A stretch of DNA of 64,000 nucleotides from Pavona decussata (taxonomy: Eukaryota): assembly GCA_977016875.1 (NCBI GenBank), contig CDRNST010000004.1, positions 806,001 to 870,000 on the forward strand, in the 5' to 3' direction. The notes beneath the pieces are model-generated. The model made no database searches. It saw only the letters and a program-made list of their open reading frames with translations, and was not told the origin of the DNA. How positions within the stretch are numbered: the first letter of the stretch is position 1; every line of letters begins with the position of its first letter. Positions 40,190-60,338 of this stretch are shown here, piece by piece. Made by a program: the position numbers and the translations under genes.

Positions 40190-40320
40190 TTCAGATTTCC
40201 ATTTACCCATGAAATGCTCTGAGCTCAATTGCGTGTTCTCCAAAGGCTTGAAGTCTTTTCTTCTTATGCGATCTAGACATGTCTTTTGCAGATGATTATC
40301 CTTAACAGCCGTTGTCAGTA
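40190..40320 (-). pseudogene. THAP-domain fragment
   Basis: LQKTCLDRIRRKDFKPLENTQLSSEHFMGK resembles the THAP W..IRR..F.P...LCSxHF motif. Confidence 0.45.
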
Positions 40321-43300
40321 ACTTTCAAGAATCCGGCAACAGAAGCAAAAAATCGAATTTCTTTTTACTTGCCCCAAAAGACCCTTTTGGTGAACTATTT
40401 TCAAAAATAATATTCAAAAGTTCCAGCAAATTTTTATTTTGGCAAAAATTGGGAAAGTTTGAAATTGGCCTAAACGTGCCCGATGGCCGGATTGAAATTA
40501 TGCAAATTAGTACATTTTCAAAACTCTCGTTCAAGACTAGGAAACTTTTTCTCGAGTTGATGTTTTCACAATCGTTTTTTTGCATCTCTTGTGCTTGCTT
40601 ACAAACTATATTTTATCTCGACCTGAACATTTTTTCATTTGAAGTTGCCAAGGAAAGAATGCAATGTTTGCTATTCCTTAGATAGAGTGATTTTTGCGAT
40701 ATTCCAGATGACCATATCATCGGGGGTATACGAATATACTGGTAATAAAAGAACTTTTTTGATCAGGTAATTGTTCTTATTTGTCATCTTAAAATATTAA
40801 GTTTGGCCCGTGAAACGTGAGTGCGCTAGGTCAAGATGTGTGGAATGCACTTTGACACAATTCGCTATTTCAGTACTTTATGTTCTTCCTGTTACTTTGC
40901 ACGTGTCAATACAGTTCACGGAAGCTTTTAGATAAAAGCCAATGAGGTCTCTGGTTTCCTCTCATGCTTTTATACACGTAAATAATTAGCTTTAAAATTT
41001 AGTGCTCCCCATATTAGCATTAAGTTGTCAAATGATTCTTTTCAGGTGAAATTTTCGAGTTTATATTGAGACGTTCAAGCGAGATGAAAGAAATGTTCCC
41101 AGGTAAATAACTTGAAATCAGTGAAAATAATATCCTCTCTCATATCATGCTACACTTCCAAACTACCGTTATTTTTAAGCTAGAAAGTGTAAATGCTCCC
41201 TTTTTACATGACCTAAAACAGAATTTGCCAAAATATTACGAATGAAGTCCAGCGCAAGAAAAAACTGAAAAAATCGAGCACCAACGTAGGTGTAAACACC
41301 AGCCGTTTCTCGACTTGCCACATGGATGAAACGCGTCGGTTGTTTTACCTCTGTGTACATTTATGACCAGGAAGTAGAAACAAAAAATCTTCTCTATGCC
41401 CATCTGTATAAAGACACTTAAAACACAGAAAGAGCACGGCTTTCTTCGTAACTTACAAAATAAACTTTTCAGCAAAAATTAATTTTTGCTGAACGTTTGC
41501 GTGTTTTGTTTTATCAAACACCCGAAGCGGAACACAATCAATACATCTTCTTAATGTAAGAGCGCCTCTTTTTGTTCTTCCTTCCTCCTTTTTTACATGC
41601 CTTAAGCTTCCCTTTTGATTAGTATTTTCATGTGAACAGGCTGATTTCTCTTGCAACATGGTAGAAAATATCGTTTTTCTTTGAATAGTCCTCCCGCGAC
41701 GAAAATTAAATTACCGCCTTCTGCGTATAGAGTTACCAAATAAATTTGTGCGGCTTAAAGCAGTTTTGCTGACAATAACCTAATCTTCTAAAGAGAATGA
41801 TTAAAAACTAAGTTCTTGGAATATAAAGTAAGAAACACGTTTTATAAGATCGATTGCTTTTTAAATGCCAATTACTTTCCTGAGTGAATGCAAAATCTTG
41901 TCATTCAAGGGAAAGTCACGCATGTAGGTAGGAAAAATATAAGCAATGAAAAGTTGACCAAACGACTCGCAAAATTTAATGTTAGGATTGTTAGCTGAAG
42001 TGAATTTTGGGAGTGCTACTTTAATTTTTGTACCCTTGCCTTTTTTTTCCATTAGTCTGTCAAAATCCCAGTATCGCCTGATACATCACATGGTTGCCTA
42101 TTGGCGAGTAAATTGATAGAGTCAACACCGAGTATTCTTAGGGCCTCATTATATGACCTTTACGTCGAAGCGGCAATCGTCGTAACCGGGTAAGGTCGGT
42201 AAACTGAGGTAACTCGAGCCTCCAAGAACTTGTTATTGATTTTCAACACCATTTTCACTTTTTTATTTTGTTTGTAAGTTCGATTTCGTTCGATTACCGA
42301 ACTCAATCGTACTCTTTCCACGGAACCATCATTTCCCGGTTTAGTGTGCACAAGGACAGTAGTTGTAACGAACCACCTTTGTAACAAGTAAGAGTGGTCT
42401 TTAAAATCAATTACGGGAGTTTCAACCTATAAAATTTGCAGTGCTTGACTGTCCTTTTTTCAGGTGGCTTTGAGTTCTATTCAACGATCATGAATTTTAA
42501 TGTAAATTAAATACAATTCCCCCAGTTCTCAGCCTGCAGAACAAATTTATTTATATATTTATTGTGTTTTTTAGGCGAGTGTTGGGAAGCGCGCACTTCG
42601 TGCTTGCCTCCGCTCGCCTGTAGTACCGGCGAGTTACTTACCACCTCTATATGTAATCCATGTCTGGATGAGTCTGGAATATGAAAATGACAACAATTGA
42701 GTTATTTATCGATTGCGTGGTGTTGTGGGCGTACATGAATTAAAAAAAGTAAACAAGCTTAATAGCTAACTCTACTCACCTGGTCAAAGACCATAGTATT
42801 TTGTAGGAAGCTTATCAGCTCTTCCAAAAAATCTCTGACTTGATCGTCATGTACCTCAAGCTGATCAATAGCAAAAGAAATAAACTCGCATTTATAAGTT
42901 TTTAAAGGATTACTGCTTGTCAAGAAGTCTTGCTAAATAAAAATTACCGTGAACGGTGTTGAAGGCGAAGCTATTGCTTGACAAACAAGCAGTGTGGTGT
43001 GATATCAGTGAAACAGCCGTAATACGCATGAGTTACCCAGGCCACATTTTGAATGTGAATCATAGGAATATTTTGGGTATGGGTATTGTTAAGGTGAAAA
43101 TTTGTGAGACGCATCTATTCATTGAAACATCAAAAGATAAACAGAGGAAAACAAGAGATCAGAAGTTGAAGTTTTTCGACAGAAGTGGCATGACTATCGA
43201 CGGTAAACTAAACACGAATTTAACATCGCCTGTAGCATCGCGGAAGTCATGTTTTTGAGCGTATTATATCAAAAACGAAAGTTCTCAATAAGAATATGTA

Positions 43301-43714
43301 TTGTATTGAAATCCTATGCTGTCAATGTTCTAATAGGCGCGATTTCCTAATAGACCTTAACGCATTGTTTTCATAGTTTTGTTGGTGACGTCACAAGGGT
43401 CACGTTGGGACATAGGCCGCAAAAATGTTATGTTTAAGCTACATACTAGCAGTTATCATAGATTATGTAGAGCGTTTGGCACCTTAAATTGAACAAAGTT
43501 TGCAAAATGGTGCACTCTTTCATGTTCGTTTCAATACAGAAACCCCAAGCTTTATGAGAGATGTAGGCTGTGACCTTTGCGTGGTTACGTTTTCAGCTAT
43601 AAGAGTTCCCTTGTTTCGAGGTGCAGAAATCACACATTGTATGCCAGCACAAAGAAACTTTCCTTGCAATAAAAGCATCTTTATCTATAGCTGTCACAGT
43701 TAAAATCCCCAGGT

Positions 43715-43815
43715 TTTCATTGGACGGGAAACAGGTGAAAACCGGAAGCGACTCTTTTTAGTAATGATGCACGTGGCGCAGTTAAGCTAATTCAGACCTG
43801 CGTCATCAACGTGAC
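43715..43815 (+). promoter_or_regulatory. Candidate proximal promoter of the Frizzled-CRD gene
   Basis: Within ~160 bp of the ATG: reverse CCAAT (attgg ~43719), ETS ACCGGAAG (43741), E-box CACGTG (43770) and CRE-like TGCGTCA (43799). Confidence 0.4.
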
Positions 43816-43872
43816 AGCTTGTTTAACGCCCGAACCAAGCCAAACCAGAACTTGGCGTCCTTAAGCAGCAAA

Positions 43873-44472
43873 ATGTTAGCGATCCTGTCCTATCTTGTGG
43901 TATTAATTTTAACGGCTGAACCTGTGGTTACCAAGGACATGCCAAAGTGTAGGAACATGGTAGTTCCCATGTGCAACAGCATTTTCGGCGCCAACACAAC
44001 TCACCATACCACCATTACAATCGCACGTCAAAAGGAACTTGGAAAGGAACTACGGACACATTTTATGCTTCTTGTGCACATGAAATGTTCTCACTTCACT
44101 GTTATGTTTGTTTGCCTGAGTCACCTGCCTTTCTGTTCAATGAGCCACACTGATCTTCCAACACTATTGCCATGCCGTCCTGTTTGTCATCATGTGTATC
44201 ACCACTGCATCTGCCATTTTAACAAGCTCCGTCTTCCCTGGCCAAAGCACATCAACTGCACTAAATTTCCTCTTTATCCAGAACTTTGTATCCAGTCGCC
44301 GTCAGTATCTTCTTTTCAACCAACAACAGCTATAACTACCACTAGAACTCTCACAAGGTTATTTTATTCAAGCCTCCATCCTACGTTGCCTTCCACTACG
44401 CCACCGCATCTGGTCACCACTTCACACACGGACTCAGAGAATGACACTCTTATAAATTTATTTGGTTTTTAG
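43873..44472 (+). CDS. Intronless signal-peptide + Frizzled cysteine-rich domain (FZ/CRD) + Ser/Thr/Pro stalk protein; TM-containing extension in the -1 frame to 44648
   Basis: AAAATG start and hydrophobic leader MLAILSYLVVLILTA. Ten CRD cysteines in canonical spacing (C..VPMC, C..FVC..LPFC, PCRPVC..C, WP..NC.KFP..LC). T/S/P-rich linker. Confidence 0.85.
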   Translation: MLAILSYLVVLILTAEPVVTKDMPKCRNMVVPMCNSIFGANTTHHTTITIARQKELGKELRTHFMLLVHMKCSHFTVMFVCLSHLPFCSMSHTDLPTLLPCRPVCHHVYHHCICHFNKLRLPWPKHINCTKFPLYPELCIQSPSVSSFQPTTAITTTRTLTRLFYSSLHPTLPSTTPPHLVTTSHTDSENDTLINLFGF

Positions 44473-44614
44473 CGGACTTTGTTCCCAGACTCATTTCTTC
44501 TCTGTATATTGTTTTGATTCTTCTTTGTTTATCCCTTTTTGTACCTTTAGTTTTGTTTGTGGCCTACGTTTGGTGGCTCAGGTTTAGGGTGGAGCGGCCT
44601 CGTCCACAGAATAT

Positions 44615-44775
44615 AAGCCTTAGACCTTTATTGAGAATTGTATTTTAGCCATTGACCTTGCCATTGTCATTTTAAATTATATTTATTTAGGATATCTTTA
44701 TTGTAAAGCGCGTGAGAGCATCTGTTTATGATTCCTGCGCCATATAAATAATAAATTATTAATTAATTAATTAAA
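44615..44775 (+). mobile_element. L2/CR1-type LINE 3' tail
   Basis: tgtaaagcgc.tgagagca...gcgccatataaataataaatt(atta)n. Same architecture as the RT-linked L2 tail at 59430-59535 on the minus strand. Confidence 0.7.
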
Positions 44776-47307
44776 TATCCCGATAAGGGAGATCGTGGGA
44801 CCACTCTCCCCTATTCCTGAGCAATGAAACTTTTTTGGAGTCGTATTGTTGTAATTCTGCTGTTTTGTTTCGTCACCAAATGTGCATGTTGCCATTTCAA
44901 AAATTTGATACATTTTGCTTTCACTACATTGTACCAAAAGATAGGTATTAGATATAAAATTTTGGCTATGTTTTGTTATATGCTCGTTCTCTTTAATTAG
45001 AATATTTTAGATGACCAGTTCTGCATTGTTTGATTAATGATTTTTATTTAAAAATCGCGCAAATCAAAAATAGGTTTAAAAATCCTTAAATACGGTAACA
45101 TTGGTCAAGACTTTCCTATTTGTTCTGGCTCTGAAAAGAGCCGTTTTGCGAAGCCATAAGAAGAACCGTTCAAAGTTGATTGAAGAAAAATTCTTCCATA
45201 TCGTTGAGTCTGTCCACCATTAAAACGATGCCCCCTCCTATGACACAGTATTGTTCCAGCACCTTGCCTAAATCTTCAAGCGAGATGGAAGAAATGTTTT
45301 TCAGAACTTCCAGGAGTTGCTCTCGTCGAGTTTGCAAAATATCCACAAGACCCAAGCGCTCATCACGAATGAAGTTGATCTCCTTCATCTAAAATCTGTG
45401 TCCTAATCTACTGTTAAAACAACAGCAAACCCTAAATAGAAATATAGATAGAAAAATATGGATCAAAATTACAACTCACAGGAATGGAATGGTTTATTTC
45501 CTGAGAGGTCCGCAAGATAAGTGGGATTGGCAGCACAGAAATAATTGATAACTTTGAAGTTACCTAGCAATAGTTAACTTTGGACTAGAGGGCATAAGCG
45601 CTTTCTTGAGACATGTGAAAAGACCTACATTTCTATGACCTGCTGTAGTTATACAATAAATTGCGTCTTTCGCAGAGGTGAATTGTGAAATGAAATAGTT
45701 TGGTGTTTTTTTAATTGGTGTTCATATAATTGCAGCGTGGAGGTACGAAAGTTCACTTCGAGTTTTGAAAAGTATATCACGAGTAGTAAAACGTTTTGAA
45801 ACTTCTTACATCCATGCTTGTTGAAAAATTATTCGCCATAAAAGTAACTAGTACATCAGTGAAAGTTATTGTTTATCGTTTGGTCGGCGGCCGCTTGCGC
45901 GACACAAGCGCACTCTCACGGCAAAACAGGAATATTTTCGACAGCTGTGATTAAATAGCAATGAATCGTTGAATGTATCTGGCTTGCTTTTCAATACTAA
46001 AGTATTCTCTTTTAGTAGCGGTGCATCCGAGGTTTGTTTTGTTGGAAAGCGCCTTAAATTCATTAGCTCCTCTGCCAATAGGACAAAAGGATACCCATTA
46101 GATCTTGTGTTATATCGAAAAAGGATTTTTTTTTTCATCAAAAAATTGTACGTGATAAGTTTCCCAAACGTTACTATGTGAAGTGGCATACTGAACGTTG
46201 CACGCATGAAAAAAAAATCAGGCTTGGTCACCGAGCAAAATTTCAAGTCAAAGAATGTTTCTTGCAGCTTTTATTTTATGCTGCATTTCCACCTCTGTTG
46301 TTGTGCGCGCGCGGCTTTTGATAGACGCTTTGACTCATTCAGCTGACGCGTACACCCTTGTTATGGCGTGGGTGAGTTTGGCGCGCACACGCGGCTACAA
46401 ACCCTTTCGAGAATCCTAAGCAAATTGTTATTTCACGTCGAAGAAAATGAGGCAGGTGGCCCGCGAGTTGCGTGAGATTCCAGTGCATATTTCTCCCAAA
46501 ACCAGTTCTCTACTAAACTTTCCATTGTTAGTTAATTGAAAACAAACTTTCCTGGAAAGTCAATGAACTCACATAACGTACGACAGTTTTTAAATGTGAC
46601 CATTCCCAAAGGATCGAAATTTTATTCAAATTTTGTAGGATTGAAAGAGTGGCCTGGAATCCCAGATAACAATAGGATAATCTTTGCTGACATCATTGTT
46701 TACATTTGGTGTTGTTAGCATACGACTTTACATAGATTAGTCTTAAATGAAGTTGTTACAAAAGTTGAAAGAGTGTTCTAAGCTTAATTTTGATGCAATT
46801 TTTCTCTCTTCTCGTGTGATTTGAAAAGGGATACCAGCTTTCAAAAACTATTTATCACTGTGACTTTCACCAGGCAATGTTTTGTTGCCTAGAAACAGAA
46901 CCAAATAGCCAAGGACTGATAGCTATAGGTGCTGAAGGCCCTAGAGATCTTGGGACCACCTCCCCCCATTCCTGAGCAATGAAACTTTTTGCGAGTCATA
47001 TTGCTGTAATTTTTTAAAAAATTTCTGCTGTTTTTTTTCGTTACCAAATGTACATGTTAGTGTCACCAAATGTACATGTCACTGTCCAGATACCGACCCC
47101 CTTAGGAGTGCTTTCTTGATAAATGGATTATGCTAAACACTTGGTTCCCATTAATAAACACCGACTGCATGTGGTTGAGAAAATATTGAGAAACACATCT
47201 CGATGAATCCCATGTGCTGTAAGCTCACTCTTTCCCCTCTTTGATCATTCCTTTTTTGGCCTAATCTTTACAAAGATTGACAGGCGTATGTATTTCATTT
47301 ATCAAAA

Positions 47308-58224: not shown

Positions 58225-59427
58225 CTTGCCAACAGAAAAATTGCTTAACGTAGCGCCATGCGGTCCGGAAATAAAGCAAGGCAAAACGAAACAAGTAGGG
58301 AAAAAATTGGTAAATAAACGCAATGAAGGGGAACGTAACCCCAACAAAGAAAATTCAGAACACAATAGAGTGAAATAGAGGGGAAAAACCGGGAACCGGT
58401 GGATTATATAGGCTTACCTTGAAAGAACAAAAGCACGTCTTAATCCGCTGCTGAACCAAGACGAATGACTATGGTATGATCATATTGATCATATGACTGA
58501 AACAAGCACCTAAAGGGGGCTATACGTTATTCCAATTCTTCCCCAAGACCCAGGACCACTCAATCCAATTGATTACTAACAAAGGCGGGAAAAGGCATAA
58601 AAATTCTATTTGCGGGCAAATATTTTATTTACAGATCAACAATTTTGTTCAAATTTATGAGAGTTGTTTTCAAACAAGGGTTTCAGGTTTGTGAATTCTA
58701 CATTACTGCAACATAGTCATGTAATCAAGTCTTGTCCACGTTGTTTGAGATGTCCCTTCTTCACTCTGCACTTCGAAAAACTTGAAAGGAACATTGATTT
58801 TCTCCAACTCTGTTTCAAGAACACCTTTCCTTTTGTGGTTACGGACCAGTTCGAAAACGTGTGACAAAATGTTTGGAGAGAGAAAGTTTTAAAGAGTCAT
58901 ACCACTTTATATTTATTTAAGTTCCACTAGAGGACTGAGTCTTGAAATGACTAATGGTAACTTCAAAATAAGCAGTGGCAGTTCATATACTTCTGTCAAC
59001 TTAAGTGTCATATCATTATATAGCAAACTTACTTGTAAAGTCAGCAATTTTTTGCCTTAATGCAGTAGCACCATATGCAGACGAATTTCGCTGTAGCTGA
59101 GTTTAGTCCATAAACCATTGCAAGAAATTTCCAATCGGAACAGCAGAACCTACATGTGGGAAAGAAAACTAATTCAGCATATTTTACAAGATAGGTGAAC
59201 ATCAGGCTTATACCCATAGTAACCCATGCAAATTACGAATAGAGTCCATGTTTTTCTGCTTGAAAGCTCATAAACTTGTAACCTATAACTCAATATCAAT
59301 GCATCAACTTACCATATCACTGAATAGTGTACACCATCCACCGTTATGCCATTTTTCCTTTAGTTCTTCCACTTGTAACAAAGTGGCTCTCAGGCAGGTC
59401 TGCACTTCATCATAGTCCTCTTTTCCT

Positions 59428-59437
59428 AAAATAAATA

Positions 59438-59485
<48 letters not shown>

Positions 59486-59860
59486 TTGTATAGCACAAAT
59501 TCCATGTAAGCATGATCAAATGCCTTTTACAGGAACAAAAATCAATGTAAACAGATAACTTATGTTAAACTACAGAAGTAGAGCTTAATAATGAATAAAT
59601 ATTAACAAAGATTTAAATTCTAAACTAATGAGGTAACAAATTAAGAACATGTCTAAAAAGGTCTTAAGATTATGTTTAAAAGGTGGTAAAGATTCAAAGC
59701 CAGTGATGTTGGTAGTAAGTTGTTCCAACAATAAGGAGCAGCGGAGGATGCCTGTGTAGGTAGCATCTTGCCACTTGGGACCCTCAGCAGAAGCTGAAAA
59801 AGTATTTTTTTTCTTTCTAATGTCTTCACTTTACATTCAGGAATTAAAGTACTGCAGCGG
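59428..59860 (-). mobile_element. L2 LINE 3' fragment with (ATT)n tail
   Basis: LLRVP..SSAAP..WNNL..FKHNLKTFL ORF2 end. Tail tgtaaaaggcatttga..tgctatacaaatt(att)n, seen as an (AAT)n microsatellite at ~59437-59484. Confidence 0.85.
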
Positions 59861-60338
59861 TGCTTAGTGGAACATTTAAAGAAAGATATACATTTTTGCA
59901 TACATGCCATTACCATTATACAAAGCAATGGTGTACTGATGGTCACATCCATGGTTTTTCTCTTCTAATACGCTAAACACAGCCATAACTACCAATTTTG
60001 TTGCTGGTTCTTCCACCATCAGCAGCAAAGCGAAGATTGATTTTGTTACCATTTGCTTGTACAGCTTCTCTAACATCCTGGATAAACAGGAGCTGCTCAA
60101 GCAATTCCCTTATGTCCCGCCATGCACCATCACCTTTTTTTGCCTGAATGATATAATTTCAAATTGACTTGTAAGAATGATTATGTGAATTTCGTAATAA
60201 AAGCCAAGGTTAAAATGTGTTCCAAACCAAAGGATAAGGGGAGCCAAGTGGCCTAGGAGAGCCAAGTGACTCATCAGTGCCCTGGTGCCCTGCCCTCAGT
60301 GCCCTGGTGATCAACTCTCGTTCTAAACTATCAGTTAA

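Follow-up and report, generated by a model that had tools for sequence, protein, structure and literature searches.

A Frizzled-type CRD gene copy and an adjoining LINE 3' end in Pavona decussata: very probably two unrelated elements

The window considered here is the whole stretch of DNA that was analysed, 64,000 nucleotides in length. On its forward strand there is a copy of a gene with a Frizzled-type cysteine-rich domain (CRD) and, directly downstream, the 3' end of a LINE (Table 1). The open reading frame (ORF) of the gene copy runs from the ATG at 43873 to a premature TAG at 44470-72 and contains a signal peptide, a Frizzled CRD, and a Ser/Thr-rich stalk. The initial annotation had proposed a CRD gene at this place, and Pfam bears this out. 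The Fz domain was matched at aa 26-133, which covers profile positions 1-107 of 110, with an E-value of 9.6e-16 and a score of 58.8 bits against a cut-off (the Pfam gathering score for Fz) of 32.1 bits. The N-terminus is hydrophobic and signal-peptide-like, and a Ser/Thr/Pro-rich stretch follows the CRD. The ten conserved cysteines were counted in the translation, and their positions align with those of the FZD5 CRD in a relative, P0003. Pfam found no seven-transmembrane Frizzled/Smoothened domain and no netrin-like (NTR) domain in the window ORF, P0003, or P0007. Fz was the only Pfam match in these proteins, and one hydrophobic helix is present.

A second open piece lies in the -1 frame (44454/44475-44645). 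Its translation comprises a juxtamembrane motif, a hydrophobic helix about 30 residues long, and basic stop-transfer residues, with SLRPLLRIVF as the last residues before the stop. A single gene frame up to this ending had been claimed. However, the CRD frame closes at the TAG at 44470-72, and the transmembrane part (44454-44614) is in the -1 frame owing to a 4-bp deletion. This deletion, at 44449/44450, shifts the frame by -1 and thus created the premature TAG at 44470. It is seen independently in a 337-nt contig from a public run (X6). The conserved "tttttag" before 44473 was also considered as the end of an intron. This was rejected, since relatives translate straight through these bases.

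Related public ORFs are continuous, namely P0003 (263 aa), P0007 (279 aa), P0014 (257 aa), and P0015 (267 aa). Thus, the coding sequence of the family is intronless, in agreement with the absence of introns that had been claimed for the gene, and the "tttttag" is coding sequence rather than a splice acceptor. The relatives possess, in order, a signal peptide, a CRD, a Ser/Thr stalk, the motif FILFLADFVPK, a transmembrane helix, the motif LRFR, and the ending IPLREILGPLPPIPEQ followed by a stop. The conserved C-terminal motif ends P0003, P0007, and P0014 as well as the genomic copies C66, C104, and C80. It nearly ends P0015, in which PLPPVPEQ is followed by 11 more residues. Judging from sequence, the family appears to consist of type-I membrane proteins, in which a signal peptide and a single Frizzled-type CRD are followed by a mucin-like Ser/Thr stalk, one membrane-spanning helix, and a short cytoplasmic tail that ends in LREILGPLPPIPEQ.

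The family shares the ten-cysteine CRD (PF01392) with Frizzled proteins, and the nearest CRDs by sequence are those of Frizzled-5, -4, -7, and -8. When P0003 was compared with PDB, the FZD5/4/7/8 CRDs were matched at E about 1e-13 (6.8e-14 for the FZD5 CRD). The matches also include sFRP3 (E 1.4e-10) and Sizzled (E about 6e-4). Unlike Frizzled, the intact relatives have no seven-transmembrane domain and cross the membrane with one helix only, and they also have a mucin-like stalk and a short tail rich in Pro. The truncated ORF of the window would resemble sFRP and Sizzled in being a secreted CRD-only protein. It differs from sFRP in that it has no NTR domain and in that its secreted state would come from the frameshift, whereas the ancestral design was membrane-anchored. 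A profile search with the family alignment returned 21 proteins, none of which is named. A protein-atlas search with P0003 gave no usable match, and nothing relevant was found in the literature on single-pass cnidarian Frizzled-CRD proteins.

Table 1. Features at the CRD gene copy, at the adjoining LINE piece, and at the comparator tail. Positions are those of the window.
Feature	Position	Strand	Evidence
Segment common with C66, 88-92% identity	42622..45534	+	blastn of window 30-60 kb against 30 kb of C66; boundary views
ORF, 199 aa	43873..44472	+	Translation; Pfam; identical predicted protein P0001
Fz cysteine-rich domain	43948..44271	+	Pfam PF01392; ten canonical cysteines all kept, one extra
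4-bp deletion, -1 shift	44449..44450	+	Comparison with C66, C45, and C144 (MAFFT); frame change (tblastn with P0003); X6 contig without gap over 44359-44614
Juxtamembrane motif, transmembrane helix, and basic stop-transfer residues (KFIWFLADFVPRLISS...WWLRFRVERPRPQN), -1 frame	44454..44614	+	tblastn with P0003, 79% identity over 61 aa
Target-site duplication AATAT, left copy	44610..44614	.	Single AATAT in C66, C144, and C104
LINE 3' end, 159 bp, 5'-truncated, APE+RT, CR1/L2 group	44615..44773	+	Repeat matches; shared upstream ORF2 ending in FKDRLKTHLFRQAFDLY and a stop; RVT_1; Exo_endo_phos
LINE 3' hairpin remnant (TGTAAAGCGCG...CGCGCTATATAAAT in good copies)	44702..44749	+	Three substitutions weaken the window copy; RNA fold
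Target-site duplication AATAT, right copy	44774..44778	.	Sequence and paralogue alignment
Orphaned end of the ancestral gene, 17 codons and the TGA (NIPIREIVGPLSPIPEQ and a stop); conserved cytoplasmic end of the family	44774..44827	+	Paralogue alignment
Decayed 3' end of a different, distantly related LINE	59420..59952	-	Tail alignment; weak ORF2 C-terminal similarity

When 43700-44775 was searched against the organism's own genome (602 Mb, 1180 contigs), the query split sharply at 44614/44615. The left 915 bases (43700-44614) matched only C66 (94%), C45 (86% and 76%), and C144 (76%). The right 160 bases, the tail part (44615-44775), gave 36 other matches at 92-97%, and all of these start at 44615.

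The window copy (C4) and C66 have a unit of about 2.75 kb in common, which holds the gene with approximately 1.25 kb upstream and 0.75 kb downstream. Outside 42622-45534, the flanks are unrelated to C66 for more than 15 kb on each side. Left of 42621 there is a different low-copy segment that is common to C56. As the unit includes non-coding flanks and unrelated DNA lies beyond it, the window copy is a DNA-level duplicate and neither a haplotig nor a retrocopy. A haplotig of the window locus was rejected for C66 because homology stops sharply at 42622 and 45534. A retrocopy or processed retrogene was rejected because the flanks, including the promoter side, are common to C4 and C66 and there is no A-run at the boundary. 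The unit was also considered as a DNA transposon or as Helitron cargo, and no terminal inverted repeats, target-site duplication, or Helitron termini were found at its ends.

The locus does have some likeness to processed retrogenes and to LINE transduction. The gene is intronless and dispersed, lies in TE-rich DNA, and has a LINE 3' end directly downstream. It differs from both in that the paralogues have long non-coding flanks in common and that the unit ends without a poly(A) or a LINE tail. A further difference from both is that there is no target-site duplication around the gene, whereas the LINE piece has its own. We read the gene copies as having probably spread by dispersed duplication at the DNA level.

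The tail motif that the initial annotation had described after the stop is present. It consists of TGTAAAGCGC...GCGCCATATAAAT and then (ATTA)n at 44702-44773, about 55 bp past the TAG at 44646-48. A 33-nt core of the tail was found in 73 genome copies at up to two mismatches, the window's included, and the reversed control gave 0, which puts the motif well above chance. The 159-bp insert as a whole contains the last ORF2 codons (out of the gene frame), the 3' UTR, a decayed hairpin, and the (ATTA)n tail, in which an AATAAA motif can be read. The DNA upstream of the point equivalent to 44615 is shared by all 15 of the tail copies that were fetched, and it encodes an ORF2 C-terminus that ends in AAPALWNNLPNAVRCAQSVQSFKDRLKTHLFRQAFDLY and a stop. 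In the C69 element, the ORF2 frame is open for 496 aa and matches RVT_1 (Pfam, E 5.5e-29). Further upstream in this element, an overlapping ORF has an APE-type endonuclease (Exo_endo_phos, E 1.1e-11). Since the other tail copies continue into an ORF2 with endonuclease and reverse transcriptase (RT), the window piece is the 5'-truncated 3' end of a LINE. The initial annotation had advised a look for an autonomous L2 with the same tail. The C69 relative bears APE and RT, but it is split into three overlapping ORFs, so the C69 copy is itself frameshifted. The proposed echo of L2 ORF2 ends in SLRPLLRIVF falls away altogether. These codons come from the end of the LINE itself, its last codons and 3' UTR, translated out of frame, and the LINE frame itself reads QAFDLY and a stop.

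In the "stringent" LINEs of the CR1/L2 type, such as UnaL2 of the eel, the RT recognises a 3' hairpin and a short tandem-repeat tail. We take the window element to be L2-like from its ORF2 C-terminal motif and its tail layout, and the group is given here as CR1/L2. The sister copies share with the stringent LINEs an ORF2 with APE and RT that ends in FKDRLKTHLFRQAF and a GC-rich 3' UTR hairpin, which in typical copies is followed by (ATT)n. The window copy shares with CR1/L2 LINEs the 5' truncation and a short target-site duplication. It differs in its length of only 159 bp and in its degraded hairpin, and there is otherwise nothing unusual about it. By RNA folding, a typical copy (L012) gave -21.4 kcal/mol (z -3.0), and the window copy gave -10.9 kcal/mol (z -0.8).

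A match had also been claimed to an RT-linked tail at 59430-59535. The layout is indeed alike. On the minus strand at 59420-59540, TGTAAA..GC....GCTATA.AAAT plus (ATT)n is common with the 44.7-kb tail. However, this tail belongs to a diverged family, and no RT was found near it by tblastn or Pfam. When the RT of the LINE described above was compared with the whole window by tblastn, nothing was found at E 1e-3 or better, and Pfam found no RT in seven minus-strand ORFs beside the 59.4-kb tail. The ORF upstream of this tail has a weak, positionally consistent likeness to the ORF2 C-terminus of that LINE (pairwise E 0.006).

The 5-bp duplication brackets the tail (44615-44773) alone, not the CRD and the tail together. 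The initial annotation had pointed to empty sites as informative, and these were found. The alignments of C66 and of C144 both break off at 44614 and pick up again at 44774, overlapping by 5 bp. In the multiple alignment, these two copies read ccacagAATATccc where the window has AATAT, 159 bp, and AATAT. C104 and C80 read through the insertion point into PLPxIPE(Q). C66, C144, C104, and C80 are thus precise empty sites. C45 is also without the tail, but its sequence diverges from 44612 onward. The absence of the tail from these five relatives is the outcome that the initial annotation had associated with an independent L2 insertion. Before the insertion, the frame ended in RPQNIPIREIVGPLSPIPEQ and a stop, the TGA at 44825-27. 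The LINE landed 16 codons before this stop and cuts off the conserved C-terminal motif (PLPPIPEQ).

The X6 contig, which is from another sample, also has the empty-site form. It matches 44359-44614 with 3 mismatches and no gap, and it passes directly into the post-insertion flank, CCCGTTAAGGGAGATC. It is nearer to the window copy than any assembled paralogue is. Its 3' flank has 7 mismatches in 39 nt and then jumps to 44894, dropping about 76 further bases. The contig may be an allele or an unassembled near-copy, and a near-copy would weaken the ordering of the frameshift and the insertion.

There are six close copies in the genome, the window copy included, and all six are broken by stops, frameshifts, or a TE insert. 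The window copy has the frameshift and the LINE insert. C66 has a 1-bp deletion that leads to a stop, and further shifts. C45 has a TE insert of about 590 bp within the CRD, and stops. In C144 the 5' part is missing and there are frameshifts, and both the close copy C104 and C80 have stops. More distant members with the same architecture are intact in the genome, for example 275-aa ORFs on C104. For the window copy against C66, dN/dS is 0.72-0.81 on few sites, and older comparisons gave 0.2-0.45 for the CRD. This pattern fits earlier constraint that is now relaxed. A 213-nt public contig matches 43748-43960 and hints at transcription of the 5' end of the window copy. The window locus is most likely a decaying pseudogene, which would give at most a truncated CRD-only product.

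Such a product could possibly still work as a secreted, sFRP-like, CRD-only Wnt decoy, with the LINE as irrelevant 3' UTR baggage. The 199-aa ORF with its signal peptide and CRD is open, all cysteines are kept, and one possible transcript contig lies over the 5' end. We consider this improbable, as dN/dS against C66 is about 0.7-0.8 on few sites and every sister copy is decaying. In addition, the contig has a depth of 2.4 and its source run (X1) is only guessed to be RNA. A broader proposal is equally doubtful. In it, the intact relatives would represent a cnidarian family of Frizzled-CRD proteins tethered to the membrane that is as yet undescribed (LGPLPPIPEQ tail, no named public member). 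The window copy, reduced by the frameshift to its signal peptide and CRD, would be a young, possibly still expressed secreted Wnt decoy derived from this family, and the LINE insertion would be a segregating 3' UTR polymorphism.

It had also been suggested that an L2 stub was exapted as the 3' end of the gene. The transmembrane frame, open from 44454 onward, does continue into the insert and terminates within it, so that its final 10 codons and its stop codon come from a stub of L2/CR1 type. With TAG 44646-48 as a new stop and the AATAAA motif as a poly(A) signal, this would be a working 3' end of a membrane-anchored protein with a novel 10-residue tail. Exaptation is nevertheless very unlikely. 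The transmembrane frame is already disconnected from the CRD frame upstream by the 4-bp deletion, and the insert removes the conserved PLPPIPEQ end. Furthermore, the hairpin is decayed, the dN/dS value is nearly neutral, and the near-identical contig of another sample does not have the insert.

A programmed -1 ribosomal frameshift at GGUUUUUAG (44464-72) could let this gene copy make either a secreted CRD or a membrane-anchored protein. The U-run right before the stop could permit tRNA-Phe to slip by -1, and the transmembrane helix of the family is indeed encoded in the -1 frame. However, the same bases are present in C66, C45, and C144, where 4 extra upstream bases join the stalk and transmembrane frames. 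The intact P0003, P0007, P0014, and P0015 likewise have the stalk and the helix in a single frame. The frame junction of the window copy is thus a copy-specific deletion rather than a conserved signal. Given also that the LINE cuts the downstream frame short and that the sister copies bear other random lesions, a programmed switch is scarcely credible.

The retro-mobile cassette of the initial annotation, in which the CRD gene and the L2 tail form one non-autonomous retroelement that is trans-mobilised by a tail-recognising L2 RT, is almost certainly wrong. The gene is intronless, good copies of the tail's LINE family have a strong 3' hairpin, and an APE/RT-bearing relative has the same tail, but CRD and tail are found side by side at no other locus: only 1 of the 73 tail copies (the window's) adjoins a CRD, and the CRD paralogues are few, with none of the 5 other CRD copies tailed. 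The target-site duplication lies around the 159-bp tail only, with none at the ends of the 2.75-kb unit; empty sites exist; the 1.25 kb upstream and 0.75 kb downstream of non-coding DNA that the paralogues share argue for DNA-level copying; and the window hairpin is decayed.

The initial annotation was therefore confirmed in part, as the sequence features that it described are largely real. With high confidence, two unrelated things adjoin at this locus, a CRD-family paralogue and an independent LINE insertion, and they do not form a mobile gene cassette. The window copy would have arisen by a DNA-level duplication of about 2.75 kb that included the intronless CRD gene. A 4-bp deletion would then have shifted the frame before the membrane anchor. 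Finally, the LINE 3' end would have inserted by target-primed reverse transcription at AATAT, duplicating 5 bp. The insertion is placed after the C4/C66 duplication, and probably also after the frameshift, because the empty-site contig already carries the 4-bp deletion. With this order, the LINE piece would sit in a dead reading frame or 3' UTR.

Transport of a signalling gene on an L2 tail would, if true, have meant a strikingly new route for the spread of genes. This is not the case here, and the juxtaposition appears to be a commonplace LINE insertion into a gene copy that is dying. For a young LINE insertion whose target-site duplication is defined, the locus offers a clean, dated presence/absence example. 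The gene family itself is of modest interest. It is small, unnamed, intronless, and single-pass, it has a conserved cytoplasmic end, and it is undergoing both duplication and loss in this genome. The members that are intact are candidates for Wnt-binding decoys or co-receptors.

A number of short motifs lie upstream of the window's Frizzled-CRD gene. CRE-like TGACGTCA and ACGTCA/CGTGAC motifs were found 5' of the ATG, at 43380-43410 and 43795-43815, and the proximal one is retained in the paralogue on contig C66. The initial annotation had described a "motif-rich promoter", and these motifs may be what it referred to.

Two of the paralogues carry inserts of their own (see table). The MITE-like insert of the C66 copy sits at a position equivalent to window 43484-43488. 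Its ends form terminal inverted repeats (GGGGAAGTATC...GATACTTCCCC), a TTAAA-type duplication accompanies it, and the same element end is present at the loose end (43484) of a contig from the public sequencing run X6. On either side of the insert in the C45 copy stands a direct repeat, roughly 13 bp long (acacatcaactgt). The 3' end of this copy diverges from window 44612 on, almost the same spot at which the LINE entered the window copy. A multicopy repeat of about 1.1 kb occupies window 40300-41420. Its copies are 88-91% identical and some form nearby inverted pairs (C225, C163, C355, C251, and C156); they look like terminal repeats of some larger element.

Features located in the Pavona decussata genome (G000)
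Feature	Fetched stretch	Genomic location
MITE-like insert, about 367 bp, upstream region of C66 paralogue	L002:934-1299	C66:1353134-1353499
Insert, about 590 bp, within CRD of C45 paralogue	L003	C45:1002205-1002792
Additional CRD ORF	L046:1470-2159	C78
Additional CRD ORFs	L047	C229
Intact intronless ORF, 275 aa	L043:1384-2211	C104, ~1.593 Mb
Intact intronless ORF, 275 aa	L045:1427-2254	C104, ~1.432 Mb
Intact intronless ORF, 256 aa	L044:1318-2088	C132

In the additional ORFs on C78 and C229, the CRD is closer to those of canonical Frizzled and sFRP proteins. One of these ORFs encodes 229 aa with a signal peptide, a CRD, and a hydrophobic C-terminus, and its product is possibly GPI- or TM-anchored. 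The C229 locus contains three CRD-encoding ORFs in tandem within 2 kb.

The intact ORFs on C104 and C132 share the layout of the window family: signal peptide, Fz CRD, Ser/Thr/Pro stalk, and transmembrane helix. A near-identical pair lies 160 kb apart on C104. The cytoplasmic tail of all three ORFs differs from that of the window family; it is proline-rich, and its terminal ...PPPPLPPRKSNVEYQNIHIYSVIAN may be a motif of the SH3 or SH2 type.

Two elements of the window family stay conserved where overall identity drops to about 35-40%: the juxtamembrane motif FILFL(A/V)DFVPK and the cytoplasmic end ...(I/L)PLRE(I/L)LGPLPP(I/V)PEQ. This was seen across the intact public relatives P0003, P0007, P0014, and P0015, the C66, C104, and C80 copies, and window 44774-44827. 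Such conservation suggests that this unnamed CRD family has a specific intracellular partner.
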